Assembly (NCBI RefSeq): GCF_964188315.1
Contig: NC_135659.1
Coordinates: forward strand, 42,160,001 to 42,224,000
DNA from: Podarcis muralis
Taxonomy: Eukaryota
Reading direction: 5' to 3'
DNA: 64,000 nucleotides
This document shows positions 31,176-38,470 of this stretch, piece after piece (within the stretch, counting starts at the first letter, position 1; each line of letters opens with the position of its first letter). A program made the position numbers and the translations under genes. The notes below the pieces were generated by a model. That model saw nothing but the letters and a program-made list of their open reading frames with translations. It did not search any database and was not told where the DNA came from.

Positions 31176-34100
31176 GTTTGCATCCTACATTTCTCCAACT
31201 TCAAAAAAGGAAAAGAAGGAAGCCAGGTTGAAGTAACAAAAACAAAACAAAACAAAAAACCCTTTGGATGACCTGTGCATTCCCTAGCAGATGAGGGTCA
31301 GTGGGAGCTGATTGAGAACGATGAACACATTATTGATCTCATGCACATTATATTGTAATGCTGACTGTAGAGGTTTCTCCGTCACATAGCTGCATATCTA
31401 TACCCTGTGTTAATTAATGCCCCACATTGTTTGTTTTTTGGCTTGTGCAAGACTTCTTATTTTTTATAGAATTTGCTCATCCAGAGGATCTAGGTTAGGG
31501 ATGGCTAACTTTCTGGCATGATGGTCGCATCTGGGGTGGCTGACCTTTAAGGGATGCATGTCAGCATGCCTGCATGAGTGGTCATGGCCAAAGTGGTCTC
31601 ACTCACTCACACACTCACTCACTCATGCATGCACACAGATGCGTGCCACACAAACACATCCACCCCACACATGTGCTGCACACCCTCTTTTTCAGTCACA
31701 CACAAACGTGCAGGCACACATCACACATCCATGTACACACCACACTCAGCTTAATCATTGCACTGATCTGAGAGGAGCATAAATCTTTTCACTCAGCTCA
31801 GCGCTGTGATGGGACAATTTCTGCTTGCCTTTGGCCCTCTGTTTCCCCATCCAAGGCATCTCTTCTCTCTCTGGCACAGCATCATTGCTAGGATATCTTT
31901 GCTCTCAAGTGGACCCAAGTCCTTCCTGTTTACTGACAATAAGACCTCCTATAGGAATGGCATTGTGCCAGAGGCAGAAGAGTGCCCAATTTTGCTGTGG
32001 GGGGCCCTGGGGGCTGCTTGGAGCAACTTGGCAGGCTGCATGTGAGCCAAAGACTCACTTCCCCACCCTAAATAGAGAAGGCTTTTTGTTTTATATCTTC
32101 CCTTTCTCTCCACACATGTACCTCAAAGTATGCTAACTTGATTTACTCTGTCATCCTTTTGTGCTTAACATGTACCTCATCTCTTTCCCACAAACTACCA
32201 GTTTCTTTCATTCCTCCTCCTTGCCCTTTCTTGCATTCATGTTTTCTCCCTATAACAGTTACAGTCTCTTATCCCTTTTCTTTTTATTCTCACTTTATTA
32301 TTTTTAAAACAACAACAACAATCCTTTATCACACATTCCAGTTTTCTTCCACACCCCCTCTGGCCCCTTCCCCTCCGAGAAGGAAGACCTTCTTTCCCTA
32401 GTCTCTCTCCCATCCCAAAATTTCAAGGTTTCCTGGCCAACATTTCTCATTTTGCAGGGTGTTGCTGGCGCTGGTCTAGCCAAAAGGTTTAAGCACAGCC
32501 AGGCACTGGGCACGCTATGGCACTGAGACCTACCTGAAGGTGGCGTGAGGTCCAATGATGGGCCATGGACCACTGTTTGAGGAACAGTGGCTAAGTGGTT
32601 GCACAGAAGGTTGTTGCTGTTAATGTGCCATTCCATAAATCCTACCTCCATCAGACCAGATATCCTTCTCTAGGAGAAATCTCACAGCAACAGCCTTTAT
32701 CCGTGCCCCTGTTGTAATTGCTAGGCCGAAGTTGTGTTTTAATTGATGAAATGTGCTATACAGCATGACAAAATTGGGAGGGGGCTGGGGAGAATCTAAG
32801 AAACCTTTTGTTACCCTTTGGAAATGTGACGAAAGTGCCAGAAGTTAAAACTCTTAGGGCTGAAATGAAATAACAGAAGCTCTCCATCCCTTCCTGAAGA
32901 CACTCATTAGATTTCACTTATCACATTCTGTTTCCATGGATTTGATCCAAAATAAAGGATGGAAAGTTATTAAGCAAGTGATAGTTTCAAAGCTCCAAGT
33001 GTCATCACTCACTGTGGATACACAGATACTTGGGGAGGGAGAGTCTTCATTACTAAGAGCTTTATTAATACTGTCATTTCCACAGGGGAGGCGCAGTTAC
33101 TGTGGTGACAGGAGCTCGAAAGATGCAAGACAAGATTTTGACTAGGTACATAAATATACCAAGAATGCTTGCATGTTCCTAAGGTGCAGTATGCCAGTCA
33201 TCACAAGGAACCATGTAAAAGGGAAAGCAGATTGCAGTCTAAGACAAGATGCAAGTTTAAGAGGTTCTAGGTTCAGCTTTAACGTTAAGCAACACATTTA
33301 ATACAACGGGATATGTTTCCACTTTTGACTTGCTCCCACTTGCAATTCCTAGGGGAATGATCTTACCAAAGTTCCATTCACTTCAATGTGATTTTTAATA
33401 TATAATTACCATTTGAGGATTAAGATTGATTTCCTATGCCCAGTTTTTATTCTGGGCATTCATTTGCAGTCAGTTATAGTATAATGGAGACGTAAACATG
33501 TGAAAGTCAAAGAATGTGAAAATGAACATTAGATTCCCCCCCCCCTTCATGTGGTAATATCTTCACAAGTAGCCATTCATTTATTAATTATTTAAGGCAT
33601 TTATCTGCTGCGCTTTGTAATATTTATCCCTGCACAATTTACAATGCAGTTAAAGCAAAACCGTAATAAAATATAAAACAGCTCAGCTTAATAAACAAAC
33701 TGCACAATTAAATATCCATTAACACAGCAGAATAGAAACTTCATACCCGGACTTCAGGAAATGACAAGAGAGTCACAACAAAACCGTCCACTTCTTCACT
33801 AACACCAGATCCAGAGTGTGACCTGTCACATGTTTGTGGCTGTTGACTTTATTGGAACAACCTCACATTCAGCATGGTAGTCATAAGGTAACCTTTGAAG
33901 AGACTATGGTGAGGGAAACTTGGAGCTTATGCTGGTACTGTCCCCAAAACCCAAGTGGAAACATTTGAAAGAGGGCAGCTCCTTAAGGTTCATCTGCTAA
34001 TGGCTTGGTAAGTATATCAGGTTGGTTCCCTCCTCCAAGATCAGATAATAGAAAACTGATTTTTTTTTTATTACAAACTTAGTGGCATTAAGCAACAGCA

Positions 34101-34378
34101 GCACTTGTCAAGTCGGCATGACCACTCACATTCCCCAAGGTAGAGAAGAAGACTGGGACAGAACTTAATAGTCCCTCCCTATCAGAGTTTGCAGGGCAGC
34201 AGCTGAAGAAGGTGCAAAAAAGAATTTTCTTGTGTGTGTTACTTGTGGCTGATTAGCTGATTTCTTTTAGATTTAGGGAATCCATCTTTTAGATTTAGGG
34301 GAGCTAGTCTCACACGTTTGTTGGCGGAGAACTAGGGTTTTTTTGGGGGGAGTTATTTGTCCTGTCTTCACGCTTTTT

Positions 34379-35452
34379 ATGATGGAGGACCGCTGTAGTC
34401 ACCCCCAACGACATGTTCTCAAGATGGAGGGTGAGGGAACAGCTGCAGTCGCCTGCGATTCCTGCGCAATGTTTGCCATCTTGCCAAAGGTTGCAGGCAG
34501 CTTTACTTGCAGCAATTGCATGTTGATTGCACTCTTACAAGACAAAGTCCAGCAACTGGAGGAACGTGTAGCTACGCTCCAAAGAATTAGAGAGCTAGAG
34601 CTCTTCTTGGAAGCAACAGAGCACACCGTCTCCACCAAGGAGGAGACAGGGGACTCCCCTGAGAAGGAGGCTAGTTCACCAACACAGGAGCCAGATATAT
34701 GGAGAAACGTGACTCAAAGAAGTAGGAGGCCCAGGGTTCGCTCTGATTGTTTAGAAATACACAATCGCTTTGAGGTCCTCTCCCCTAGCATGGAAGACGA
34801 AGAGCAGACTCCATTTGAGGATCTCTCCCTCATTACAGTTGATCAGGTATATGAAGACGAGCAGCAAAGTCAGTCCTCAGGGAATGTGCAGGCGACCTTG
34901 GAACGGACAGCTCACGGAAGAACCCCGACCAGACCTAAGAGGAGGCGTGTAGTGGTGATAGGGGATTCCCTACTGAGGGGAACAGAAGCAGTGATCTGTG
35001 GGCCTGACAAGATGTCTCGGGAAGTGTGCTGTCTCCCCGGGGCTAAGATCCAAGATGTAACTGAACGACTGCAAGGAATCATAAAACCCACTGACAAATA
35101 CCCCTTCCTCTTGGTTCATGTGGGAACCAATGACACTGCAAGCAATAGCCTCCAGAGGATCAAAAGAGACTACGAGGCTCTGGGCAGGAAATTGAAGCAA
35201 TTAAATGCACAAATTGTCATCTCATCTGTCCTCCCAGTTGAACGACGTGGCCCAGGGAGAGAGGGAAAAATAGTGGAAGTGAACAACTGGCTTCGCAAAT
35301 GGTGTAAACAGGAACGGTTTGGATTCTTAGATCACGGGCTGCAGCTTCTTAAAGATGGACTTCTGGCAAGCGATGGGCTGCACCTCACAACGGTTGGGAG
35401 GAATGTTTTTGCCAAAAATCTCAGAAACCTCATCAGGAGGGCTTTAAACTGA
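34379..35452 (+). CDS. CR1 ORF1 protein: zinc-finger/leucine-zipper plus SGNH/GDSL esterase domain
   Basis: CDSC...CSNC finger and an [21 protein letters not shown] coiled coil. SGNH blocks [27 protein letters not shown] and DGLHL. First ATG at 34379; the strong-Kozak ATG (aagATGG) at 34424 may be the real start. TGA at 35450-35452. Confidence 0.92.
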
Positions 35453-35457
35453 CTAAT

Positions 35458-38379
35458 GTGGGGGAGGGAGACAGTGCTCCTGAAGGTAGGAGTCTATCAA
35501 TTGATGAAGATGATCATCCAAATGTCATAGACCAAATGGAGCAAAGAGCACACAGACCTAGTGGTGGGAGGAAAAAATCCTTAAATAAGAGACACGGGGG
35601 AATGATTAATGGACTTCAATGTCTGTACACTAATGCGCAAAGCATGGGAAATAAACAAGATGAGCTTGAGCTCTTGGTACAGCAAACTAAATATGACATA
35701 ATAGGCATCACTGAAACCTGGTGGGATAAGTCCCACGATTGGAATGTAATAATCGAGGGATACAATCTATTTCAGAGAAACAGACCAGACAAGAAAGGAG
35801 GAGGAGTGGCGTTATATGTCAGGGATGTGTATACCTGTGAAGAGATCCAAGATTTAGAACCTCAAAGCCAAAGTGAGAGCATTTGGGTCAAAATTAAGGG
35901 AGAGAAGAATAACAGAGACCTCATTGTGGGAGTTTACTATAGATCCCCAAGCCAAACGGAGGACATAGATGATGCCTTCCTGGAACAGATGGCCAAGCAT
36001 GCAAAAGGAAGGGAGATAGTAGTAATGGGGGACTTCAATTACCCGGATATTTGTTGGATGTCAAACTCAGCCAAGAGCATAAGGTCAAACAGATTCCTCA
36101 CTGGACTTGCAGACAACTTCATTGTCCAGAAAGTGGGAGAAGCAACAAGAGGAACAGCCATTTTAGATCTGGTCCTAACCAATGTTGATGACCTGGTTAG
36201 TGGGGTAGAAGTGGAAGGATCATTAGGCGCGAGTGATCATGCTCTTCTAAAGTTTACTATACAGCGGAAAGGAGCAGCCAAGCTTACTAGGACTCAATTT
36301 CTTGACTTTAAGAAAGCCGACTTCATAAAACTTAGGGAAGTGCTGGGTGAGATCCCATGGACAGTAATACTAAAAGGAAAGGGAGTTCATGATGGCTGGG
36401 AGTTTGTTAAGAGGGAGATAGTAAAAGCACAACTTCAGGCAATACCAATGAGACGGAAACATGGAAGGTGCCTAAAGAAACCAGGGTGGCTATCTAAAGA
36501 ACTTTTAACTGAGTTAAGATTAAAAAAGGATGTGTACAAAAAATGGAAAAGGGGGGAAACCACCAAAGAGGAATTCAAACAAATAGCCAGCACGTGTAGA
36601 CACAAAGTCAGAAAAGCTAAAGCACAGAATGAACTCAGGCTTGCTAGAGAGGTTAAAAGCAACAAAAAAGGCTTTTATGGGTATGTTCGTAGCAAAAGGA
36701 AGAACAAAGAAACAGTGGGGTCACTCAGAGGAGAAGATGGTGAAATGCAAACAGGGGACACAGAAAGGGCTGAACTCCTCAATGCCTTCTTTGCCTCAGT
36801 CTTCTCCGATAAAGAAAACAATGCCCGACCTGAAGAATTTGGAGCAAATGATTCAGCAGAGGAAACACAGCCCAGAATAACTAAGGAGATAGTACAAGAA
36901 TACTTGGCTAGTCTAGATGTATTCAAGTCTCCAGGGCCAGATGAACTGCATCCAAGAGTATTAAAAGAACTGGCAGATGTGATCTCAGAACCACTGGCAG
37001 TCATCTTTGAGAATTCCTGGAGAACAGGCGAAGTCCCGGCAGACTGGAGGAGGGCAAATGTTGTACCTATTTTCAAAAAGGGGAAAAGAGAGGACCCAAA
37101 TAATTACCGCCCAGTCAGTCTGACATCAATACCAGGGAAGATTCTGGAGCAGATCATTAAGCAAACAGTCTGTGAGCACCTAGAAAGGAATGATGTGATC
37201 ACCAATAGTCAGCATGGATTTCTGAAAAATAAGTCATGTCAGACTAACCTGATCTCGTTTTTTGACAGAATTACAACCCTGGTAGATGAAGGGAACGCAG
37301 TGGATGTAGCCTACCTTGATTTCAGCAAGGCATTTGACAAGGTGCCCCATGATATTCTTGTAAAGAAGCTGGTAAAATGCGGACTTGACTATGCTACCAC
37401 TCAGTGGATTTGTAACTGGCTGACTGACCGAACCCAAAGGGTGCTCATCAATGGTTCCTCTTCATCCTGGAGAAGAGTGACTAGTGGGGTGCCACAGGGT
37501 TCTGTCTTGGGCCCGGTCTTATTCAACATCTTTATCAACGACTTGGATGATGGACTCAAGGGCATCCTGATCAAATTTGCAGATGACACCAAACTGGGAG
37601 GGGTGGCTAACACCCCAGAGGACAGGATCACACTTCAAAACGACCTTGACAGATTAGAGAACTGGGCCAAAACAAACAAGATGAATTTTAACAGGGAGAA
37701 ATGTAAAGTATTGCACTTGGGCAAAAAAAATGAGAGGCACAAATACAAGATGGGTGACACCTGGCTTGAGAGCAGTACATGTGAAAAGGATCTAGGAGTC
37801 TTGGTTGACCACAAACTTGACATGAGCCAACAGTGTGACGCGGCAGCTAAAAAAGCCAATGCAATTCTGGGCTGCATCAATAGGAGTATAGCATCTAGAT
37901 CAAGGGAAGTAATAGTGCCACTGTATTCTGCTCTGGTCAGACCTCACCTGGAGTACTGTGTCCAGTTCTGGGCACCACAGTTCAAGAAGGACACTGACAA
38001 ACTGGAACGTGTCCAGAGGAGGGCAACCAAAATGGTCAAAGGCCTGGAAACGATGCCTTATGAGGAACGGCTAAGGGAGCTGGGCATGTTTAGCCTGGAG
38101 AAGAGGAGGTTAAGGGGTGATATGATAGCCATGTTCAAATATATAAAAGGATGTCACATAGAGGAGGGAGAAAGGTTGTTTTCTGCTGCTCCAGAGAAGC
38201 GGACACGGAGCAATGGATCCAAACTACAAGAAAGAAGATTCCACCTAAACATTAGGAAGAACTTCCTGACAGTAAGAGCTGTTCGACAGTGGAATTTGCT
38301 GCCAAGGAGTGTGGTGGAGTCTCCTTCTTTGGAGGTCTTTAAGCAGAGGCTTGACAGCCATATGTCAGGAGTGCTCTGA
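35458..38379 (+). CDS. CR1 ORF2 protein: apurinic-like endonuclease plus reverse transcriptase (start mode uncertain)
   Basis: 973-codon open frame. APE motifs YTNAQS, GITETWW, GDFN, LDLVL and SDH. RT motifs [27 protein letters not shown] and FADD. CR1-type C-terminus ([21 protein letters not shown]). The frame is open from 35353, and the first in-frame ATG is at 35536. Confidence 0.96.
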
Positions 38380-38442
38380 TGGTGTTTCCTGCTTGGCAGG
38401 GGGTTGGACTCGATGGCCCTTGTGGTCTCTTCCAACTCTATG

Positions 38443-38470
38443 ATTCTATGATTCTATGATTCTATGATTC
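38443..38470 (+). repeat. CR1 3' terminal (ATTCTATG)n octamer tail
   Basis: ATTCTATG x3 plus ATTC, with perfect units, directly after the 3'UTR. Confidence 0.95.

Follow-up and report, generated by a model that had tools for sequence, protein, structure and literature searches.

A conserved slippery heptamer and a probable -1 frameshift signal at the junction of the two reading frames of CR1 elements

[quoted passage not shown] To our knowledge, the mode in which its second open reading frame (ORF2) is translated has never been established. The copy described here lies in a 64,000-nucleotide (nt) stretch of Podarcis muralis DNA (NCBI RefSeq assembly GCF_964188315.1, contig NC_135659.1, positions 42,160,001 to 42,224,000 of the forward strand), referred to as the window. 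Its ORF1 ends on the slippery heptamer U_UUA_AAC. From comparison across lineages, this junction has probably been under selection as a -1 frameshift signal, from which an ORF1p-ORF2p fusion would result.

Several described systems are close to this arrangement. In nidoviruses, a strong pseudoknot lies 5-6 nt downstream of the heptamer. At the -1 sites of luteoviruses, dianthoviruses, and umbraviruses, the stop codon of the upstream ORF directly follows the heptamer, as it does in CR1. Unlike CR1, these are plant RNA viruses that use heptamers GGGUUUU and GGAUUUU and long-range RNA structures. The LINE element L1 has a spacer between its ORFs and no slippery heptamer, whereas CR1 is without such a spacer.

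The literature that could be searched contains no description of CR1 frameshifting. Its scope ends short of the primary papers on CR1 from 1997-2003, and an early mention is possible. The same literature gave no report of -1 frameshifting for ORF2 at any non-LTR ORF1/ORF2 junction. A 2016 review of frameshifting lists no -1 site between ORF1 and ORF2 of a LINE, mentions only the HeT-A gag, and leaves TART unresolved (PMC5009743). A 2026 survey of the CR1 group and a 2014 study of amniote CR1 make no mention of a frameshift, an overlap, or slippery sequences (PMC13343379, PMC4316615). Gag-Pol-style -1 frameshifting is a known mechanism; its use by a non-LTR element of vertebrates, next to a downstream element that is non-canonical, would be new and is judged likely on the comparisons below.

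The CR1 copy and its ORF1/ORF2 junction

The copy is composed of two ORFs (Table 1). Pfam assigns ORF1 to PF13472 (GDSL esterase) and ORF2 to PF03372 (Exo_endo_phos) and PF00078 (RVT_1). ORF1 matches the solved esterase structure of zebrafish ZfL2-1 ORF1p (4c1b) with E = 2.8e-22, and it is 95% identical to a Podarcis muralis protein. An esterase ORF1, an ORF2 with an APE endonuclease and a reverse transcriptase (RT), and an octamer microsatellite at the 3' end instead of poly(A) place the element in the CR1 clade.

ORF1 starts with ATG at 34379 and stops with TGA at 35450-35452, the last codons being GCT TTA AAC TGA (35441-35452). The initial annotation had proposed a -1 frameshift at TTTAAAC (35443-35449), read in X_XXY_YYZ phase right before this stop. 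It placed ORF2 in the -1 frame, open from 35353 (after TAA at 35350-35352), overlapping ORF1 by 100 nt and with its first ATG at 35536. All of its coordinates for ORF1, the heptamer, and ORF2 agree with a re-reading of the sequence, in which ORF2 has its first in-frame ATG at 35536-35538 and its stop at 38377-38379. Its estimate of about 1,320-1,330 amino acids (aa) for the polyprotein was close in size; the computed length of the predicted fusion is 1,333 aa. That the -1 frame is already open ahead of the heptamer (35353-35442) was considered as a signal and set aside: the open length is not conserved in other lineages, and it is probably due to chance.

Bare TTTAAAC is not rare, with 14 occurrences in the window against 16 expected. 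The features of this occurrence that are not due to chance are its position, its phase, and its conservation.

In the proposed mechanism, most ribosomes would translate ORF1 and terminate at TGA 35450. A minority would slip back by one base at U_UUA_AAC, where tRNA-Leu would exchange UUA for UUU and tRNA-Asn would exchange AAC for AAA. These ribosomes would continue with CUG in the ORF2 frame to give the 1,333-aa ORF1p-ORF2p fusion. The output would be Gag-Pol-like, with little endonuclease and RT made per ORF1p. The slip could be coupled to termination, with the stop codon in the A site, or the G-rich run downstream (the G-run) could be bound by a protein. From the conserved signal, we infer the slippage itself.

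Conservation of the junction and of its nucleotides

An ORF1 protein search gave 100 homologues from lizards, snakes, turtles, poison frogs, birds, crocodilians, and metagenome contigs. About two thirds end in LN right at the stop, and most of the others are truncated or chimeric gene models. Where DNA was read, in the snapping turtle Chelydra, the colubrid snake Erythrolamprus, a penguin, Varanus, and Zootoca, NNT TTA AAC is followed by TAG or TGA and ORF2 is in the -1 frame. Four metagenome contigs also hold DNA-read CR1 junctions with an in-phase heptamer, an adjoining stop, and ORF2 in -1. The GGGCTTTAAACT junction, which the initial annotation had expected in other amniote CR1s, is indeed present in these five animals and in many metagenome-borne copies. 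A stop codon (TAG, TGA, or TAA) directly follows the heptamer in every CR1 lineage examined. Amphibian membership is indicated at the protein level only, by frog proteins ending in RRALN.

A sample independent of the motif was obtained by anchoring on the endonuclease domain in metagenome contigs, which gave 80 loci, 66 of them with enough upstream sequence. TTTAAAC with an immediate stop occurs within 420 nt upstream of the endonuclease domain in 31 of the 66, against about 0.08 expected. The phase is -1 in 23 of these 31 junctions, and the remainder are decayed copies with insertions or deletions. Most of the anchored loci come from one host-contaminated sample, yet they belong to several families, with heptamer-to-endonuclease distances from 96 to 279 nt.

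The sample in question is Ga0065711 (L006-L085), a Joint Genome Institute (JGI) 'metagenome'. Its contigs, as long as 89 kb and carrying several families of CR1, supplied the majority of the loci. Contamination with host DNA is heavy, and the host looks bird-like by the similarity of its junctions to the penguin copy.

Codon usage at the junction was compared over the last 58 ORF1 codons of 10 lineages, aligned gap-free; 7 of the 10 had been chosen via the protein alone and not by a DNA motif. The terminal Leu is TTA in all 10 lineages, against 7.9% TTA among the 278 Leu codons of the same ORF1s. The terminal Asn is AAC, again in 10/10, against a background of 57%. Six other conserved Leu columns each use 3-5 different codons, with TTA found once.

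The wobble T before these codons was tested on protein alone. An exhaustive profile search gave 120 new representatives of esterase ORF1s at 50% identity, of which 59 end in LN, 30 end in F-L-x, and 28 are mostly truncated. The residue before the LN or F-L-x motif takes 12 identities (Ala, Thr, Ser, Cys, His, Tyr, and Phe among them). A residue that has no NNT codon (K, Q, E, M, or W) precedes the motif in 1 of 89 representatives, against a background of 22.7% (P = 3e-9), and in 3 of 187 when all homologues with LN or F-L-x ends are counted. Such scarcity is expected if X must be U. The Glu exception was read in DNA as GAG TTA AAC, or G_UUA_AAC, which is a natural variant of the site in equine arteritis virus (PMC5009743). 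U_UUA_AAC itself is ranked among the most shift-prone heptamers on mammalian ribosomes (PMC5009743).

In the sequences compared, the nucleotide-level constraint appears to fall exactly on the heptamer. The initial annotation had asked if TTTAAAC is conserved more strongly than the encoded amino acids require while ORF2 stays in -1, and both the codon and the protein test indicate that it is. In the linker from the heptamer to the ATG, every difference between the window and Zootoca is non-synonymous, and as a test for a coding signal the linker counts for neither side. The bases 5' of the heptamer (AGG GC, 35438-35442 and equivalents) are also conserved at the nucleotide level, the Arg codon being AGG in 8/9 against a background of 39% (P = 0.003). 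An influence of the upstream context on slippage may account for this.

A sister clade carries a different heptamer at the same place. Two distant loci of the endonuclease-anchored set, L068 and L073 (38% endonuclease identity), have esterase ORF1s ending in CCT TTT TTA GGG TAG and AGT TTT TTA CTG TAG, that is, an in-phase U_UUU_UUA with ORF2 in -1. The -1 frame of L073 is open from only 3 nt ahead of the heptamer, and the ORF1 stop comes 3 nt behind it, which leaves 13 nt for any change of frame. A search with the L073 ORF1 gave 41 homologues, nearly all ending in F-L-x-stop, and 67 ORF1 homologues overall were counted with this end. L090, from a soil metagenome and 44% identical, reads AGT TTT TTA GTC TAG with an overlap window of 25 nt. 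All three members read in DNA (L068, L073, and L090) follow NNT TTT TTA NNN TAG with ORF2 in -1, and their overlap windows are 13, 25, and 58 nt.

Each of the three also has a hairpin of 9-10 bp that lies 11-12 nt after U_UUU_UUA and begins 5-6 nt after the stop. Its loops vary in length and sequence, two base pairs are compensatory, and the folding z-scores are -1.7, -3.7, and -2.0. Because two related clades each fix a different canonical heptamer, in phase and at the end of ORF1, slippage is hard to avoid as the explanation.

On these comparisons, the heptamer, the adjacent stop, the -1 ORF2, and a G-run at the fixed position +11 are ancestral and conserved in squamate, turtle, and bird CR1 and in related elements. 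The signal is probably more than 300 million years old because it is spread across sauropsids. No canonical heptamer was found in the distant loci L081, L084, and L072, and the cassette is thus not universal among CR1-like elements.

Two metagenome loci show other junctions. In L075 (920-1150; contig Ga0206224_1000305), an esterase-like ORF1 overlaps ORF2 by 47 nt, and ORF2 is in the +1 frame and not in -1. There is no Met between the overlap and the endonuclease domain, and the locus has either a different junction solution or an indel in a single copy. In L069 (1240-1300; Ga0209788_1000452), a non-esterase ORF1 of the PHD-finger type shares about 200 nt with a -1 ORF2. Close to where this overlap begins stands an in-phase A_AAA_AAC, and 6 nt beyond it comes a canonical G-quadruplex motif of three tiers, GGG-N6-GGG-N5-GGG-N3-GGG. 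A slip at A_AAA_AAC would remove about 60 residues from the end of ORF1.

Some reptile gene models (P0010, P0039, P0143, and P0254) run from CR1 ORF1 into sequence further downstream or into exons of the host. Among them are a sea-turtle protein of 531 aa that has both an esterase and an endonuclease domain and models called beta-parvin, NUBP1, or replicase polyprotein 1a. Such fused models are annotation artefacts, because the ORF1/ORF2 arrangement was not recognised.

Table 1. Position of the CR1 copy, its reading frames, and the junction elements in the window.
Feature	Position	Strand	Basis
Full-length, coding-intact CR1 LINE copy	~34036..38470	+	ORFs, Pfam domains, 3' tail
ORF1, 357 aa, Cys-rich N-terminal part and SGNH/GDSL esterase	34379..35452	+	ends ...RRALN, then TGA
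Slippery heptamer T_TTA_AAC, phase X_XXY_YYZ	35443..35449	+	last two ORF1 codons and the wobble T before them
ORF1 stop TGA, directly 3' of the heptamer	35450..35452	+	junction comparison
Conserved G-run (GGGGGAGGGAG), candidate non-canonical 3' stimulator	35460..35470	+	position profile over 15 lineages
ORF2 frame after the predicted shift, from CTG at 35449, 976 codons to the stop	35449..38379	+	ORF reading
APE endonuclease in ORF2	~35617-36336	+	Pfam
Reverse transcriptase in ORF2	~37078-37728	+	Pfam
CR1-type 3' tail (ATGATTCT)n	38439..38470	+	sequence

The downstream element and other explanations of the junction

In a position profile over 15 lineages, seven variable bases follow the stop; the G-run then occupies +11 to +15, and GG.G occupies +18 to +21. 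The frequency of G is 80-100% at +11 to +15 and reaches 100% at +12 and +13. The Gly codon of the G-run is GGG in 14/15 against a background of 30%, and the constraint on the run therefore acts on the RNA. The run begins 10 nt past the heptamer and 7 nt past the stop. The 8-nt spacer given by the initial annotation holds when counted to GTGGGGG; the unbroken run GGGGG (35460-35464) is the part that starts 10 nt after the heptamer.

Secondary structure was searched for around this run. The segments GGGAG (35466-70), CTCCT (35477-81), and AGGAG (35488-92) lie where the initial annotation had placed them. As stimulators, the stems GGGAG/CTCCT and CTCCT/AGGAG were rejected, since they are lost in Zootoca and in more distant squamate copies. 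The two-tier G-quadruplex potential proposed alongside them was not upheld: the window junction has no two- or three-tier motif with loops of up to 7 nt. Among 15 lineages, a two-tier motif occurs in 7 and a three-tier motif in none, and with the G-quadruplex option of ViennaRNA the two-tier form folds in only 4 of 18 lineages. A G-quadruplex was rejected as the stimulator. Rfam gave no family match at the junction, and no stable stem-loop or pseudoknot was found 5-9 nt downstream of the CR1 heptamer in the folded lineages. Varanus komodoensis (L086:5378-5406) has the G-run expanded to 13 G, followed by TTCAGG and six C. This expansion forms a 7-bp G/C hairpin 6 nt after the stop region and is a lineage-specific strengthening of the downstream element.

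Several points weigh against frameshifting. The conserved downstream element is a linear G-run at 10 nt, beyond the usual 5-9 nt, and is not a canonical G-quadruplex. Folds of 81 nt from five lineages gave z = +0.4 to -0.7 against shuffled controls, with nothing stable, and these values near 0 agree with the impression of a weak stimulator that the initial annotation had gained by eye. The consensus fold of four squamate sequences reaches only -6.3 kcal/mol, and the minimum free energy folds of 18 lineages share no helix. The uncertain role of the G-run as a candidate stimulator is the main weakness of the frameshift reading. In addition, the lineages share ancestry, so the P values given above overstate their independence. 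A further point is that ATG, GTG, CTG, or TTG (NTG) occurs in the ORF2 frame 2-3 codons past the stop in about 10/16 lineages, which fits reinitiation. Human L1 is also a case of a LINE whose ORF2 is reportedly translated without an AUG and without frameshifting (Alisch et al. 2006).

If what matters is a pause while the A site holds the stop codon, the distance of the G-run is normal. According to the 2016 review, natural G-rich or G-quadruplex frameshift stimulators are not known (PMC5009743). It is a tentative proposal, held with low confidence, that esterase-type LINEs are the first non-LTR elements with RT made only as a -1 fusion and that the CR1 stimulator is of a new kind, a linear G-run 7 nt past the stop. 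The slip would then be coupled to slow termination, with tRNA-Asn moving from AAC to AAA in the P site, or to protein binding. The binder could be ORF1p itself or a host protein that binds G-tracts, in which case ORF2 output would be self-regulating. A structure-free G-run at a fixed distance may itself point to a non-canonical stimulator.

Termination-reinitiation is the strongest of the other explanations, though an unlikely one. After the ORF1 stop, the 40S subunit would stay on the RNA and restart at a nearby AUG or near-cognate codon to give free ORF2p, as in human L1 and silkworm SART1. The subunit would be kept there by the G-run or, in the sister clade, by the hairpin. This explanation fits a stop that always adjoins the heptamer, a G-run 7 nt past it, and a sister-clade hairpin that starts 5-6 nt after its own stop. 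It also fits L1, where ORF2 translation is said to be AUG-independent. SART1, with its UAAUG coupling, is a LINE precedent that needs downstream structure, as cited in PMC3708506.

The start codons of ORF2 bear on this directly. The first in-frame Met lies 4 to 94 codons after the heptamer, depending on the lineage. In the turtle (with an intact ORF2 of 967 aa), the snake, and L004, it lies behind the endonuclease motifs NxxS and ITETW, which hold the catalytic Asn and Glu, and no AUG start is possible for ORF2 in these three because of that position. As read from these sequences, ordinary AUG initiation is ruled out there, and an AUG-independent reinitiation of the L1 type would be compatible. 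No conserved restart AUG that overlaps or adjoins the ORF1 stop was found across the lineages compared. As a candidate for an upstream motif that pairs with 18S rRNA helix 26, as in the TURBS of caliciviruses, the window has a UGGGA about 50 nt upstream (35395-35399), which occupies a Gly-Arg/Lys coding position.

The NTG codons 2-3 codons past the stop are ATG in 5 lineages, and their occurrence in about 10/16 exceeds the roughly 12% expected by chance. They lie at 35453-35461 in the window and at the equivalent sites in L002, L004, L005, L040, L047, L049, L087, L088, and L089. They may be secondary restart sites or a side effect of UG often preceding the G-run. No NTG stands in the spacer of the bird-type family that is most abundant, of the turtle copy that is intact, or of Varanus, which counts against reinitiation, as does the lack of an AUG conserved across the lineages. 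Reinitiation also leaves unexplained the fixed and rare TTA, the AAC, and the wobble T before them, the different in-phase canonical heptamer of the second clade, and the fixed -1 relation of ORF2.

It is improbable that the motif is kept for a reason other than recoding, for example as a packaging element, an internal TATA-like promoter, or a binding site, with the slippery match a coincidence. TTTAAA and a G-rich box can in principle be read as a promoter-like or protein-binding module, and the folds gave no canonical stimulator structure. Against this, two clades have two different motifs, both canonical X_XXY_YYZ, in the right phase, and placed where ORF1 runs out. If ORF2 had a subgenomic transcript, that transcript would, in the turtle and the snake, lack any AUG before the catalytic residues of the endonuclease.

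RNA evidence came from raw RNA sequencing (RNA-seq) reads of two runs from the same species, with a combined depth of about 37-47 over 35368-35515. These reads show no pile-up of read starts downstream of the motif, which counts against a motif kept for reasons other than recoding. They also show no insertion or deletion at the 5% level or above over this stretch, the heptamer (depth about 40) included, and no read-supported joint linking ORF1 to ORF2; the only skip, of 310 nt and at contig level, does not restore the ORF2 frame. The frame discontinuity must be solved in translation because it is present unaltered in the RNA. Correction in a minority of mRNAs at or near TTTAAAC, by polymerase slippage, editing, or splicing, is scarcely credible: homopolymer runs can cause transcriptional slippage, but the runs in TTTAAAC are only 3 nt long, and the reads carry neither the indel nor the joint.

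The depth of RNA-seq coverage rises about 20-fold from 5' to 3' across 34036-38470, on both strands, and many reads run into unrelated flanks. Much of the RNA signal of the element may be read-through transcription. The RNA-seq is no demonstration of autonomous CR1 transcription, because this pattern is expected from thousands of 5'-truncated copies within host transcripts.

Consequences and comparison with known systems

With these explanations weighed, the comparative data support a -1 frameshift at the ORF1/ORF2 junction, as the initial annotation had interpreted it, the mechanism being read from the conserved signal. If true, the assembly of the CR1 ribonucleoprotein and its cis-preference would be pictured differently from those of L1, whose ORF2p is separate. 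There would be an explanation for the invariant "LN-stop" with which ORF1 closes, and intact CR1 copies could be annotated by a simple rule. A deeply conserved case from cellular genomes would join a list of -1 frameshift sites that is dominated by viruses.

Among LINEs, human L1 and SART1 are like CR1 in having a bicistronic RNA, a very low need for ORF2, and no reliance on a conserved ORF2 AUG (PMC3708506). The overlapping stop-start of SART1 is absent from CR1, which has an in-phase heptamer and a strictly -1 ORF2.

[quoted passage not shown] A minority of stimulators located 12-15 nt away act with trans-factors (PMC5009743). The CR1 element is G-rich and not C-rich and has no known binding protein, and the likeness is one of spacing only.

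Retroviral and LTR gag-pol -1 frameshifting, such as that at the U_UUU_UUA and stem-loop of human immunodeficiency virus 1 (HIV-1), would share its logic with CR1: a structural or accessory protein is made in excess, and the fusion carries the RT. The sister clade, with U_UUU_UUA followed by a hairpin, resembles the HIV-1 arrangement. Unlike retroviruses, CR1 is a non-LTR element with neither Gag nor a protease, and its predicted fusion, of an esterase-type ORF1p to endonuclease and RT, would presumably not be cleaved.

The nidovirus ORF1a/1b junction uses the same heptamer as CR1 in the same phase (U_UUA_AAC in the coronavirus infectious bronchitis virus, IBV), and in both the downstream ORF encodes the polymerase. 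CR1 is unlike nidoviruses in that no stable structure can be detected, the G-run lies 10 nt downstream, and the stop comes directly after the heptamer. The G_UUA_AAC of equine arteritis virus is the exact variant found in the one CR1 lineage with Glu before LN.

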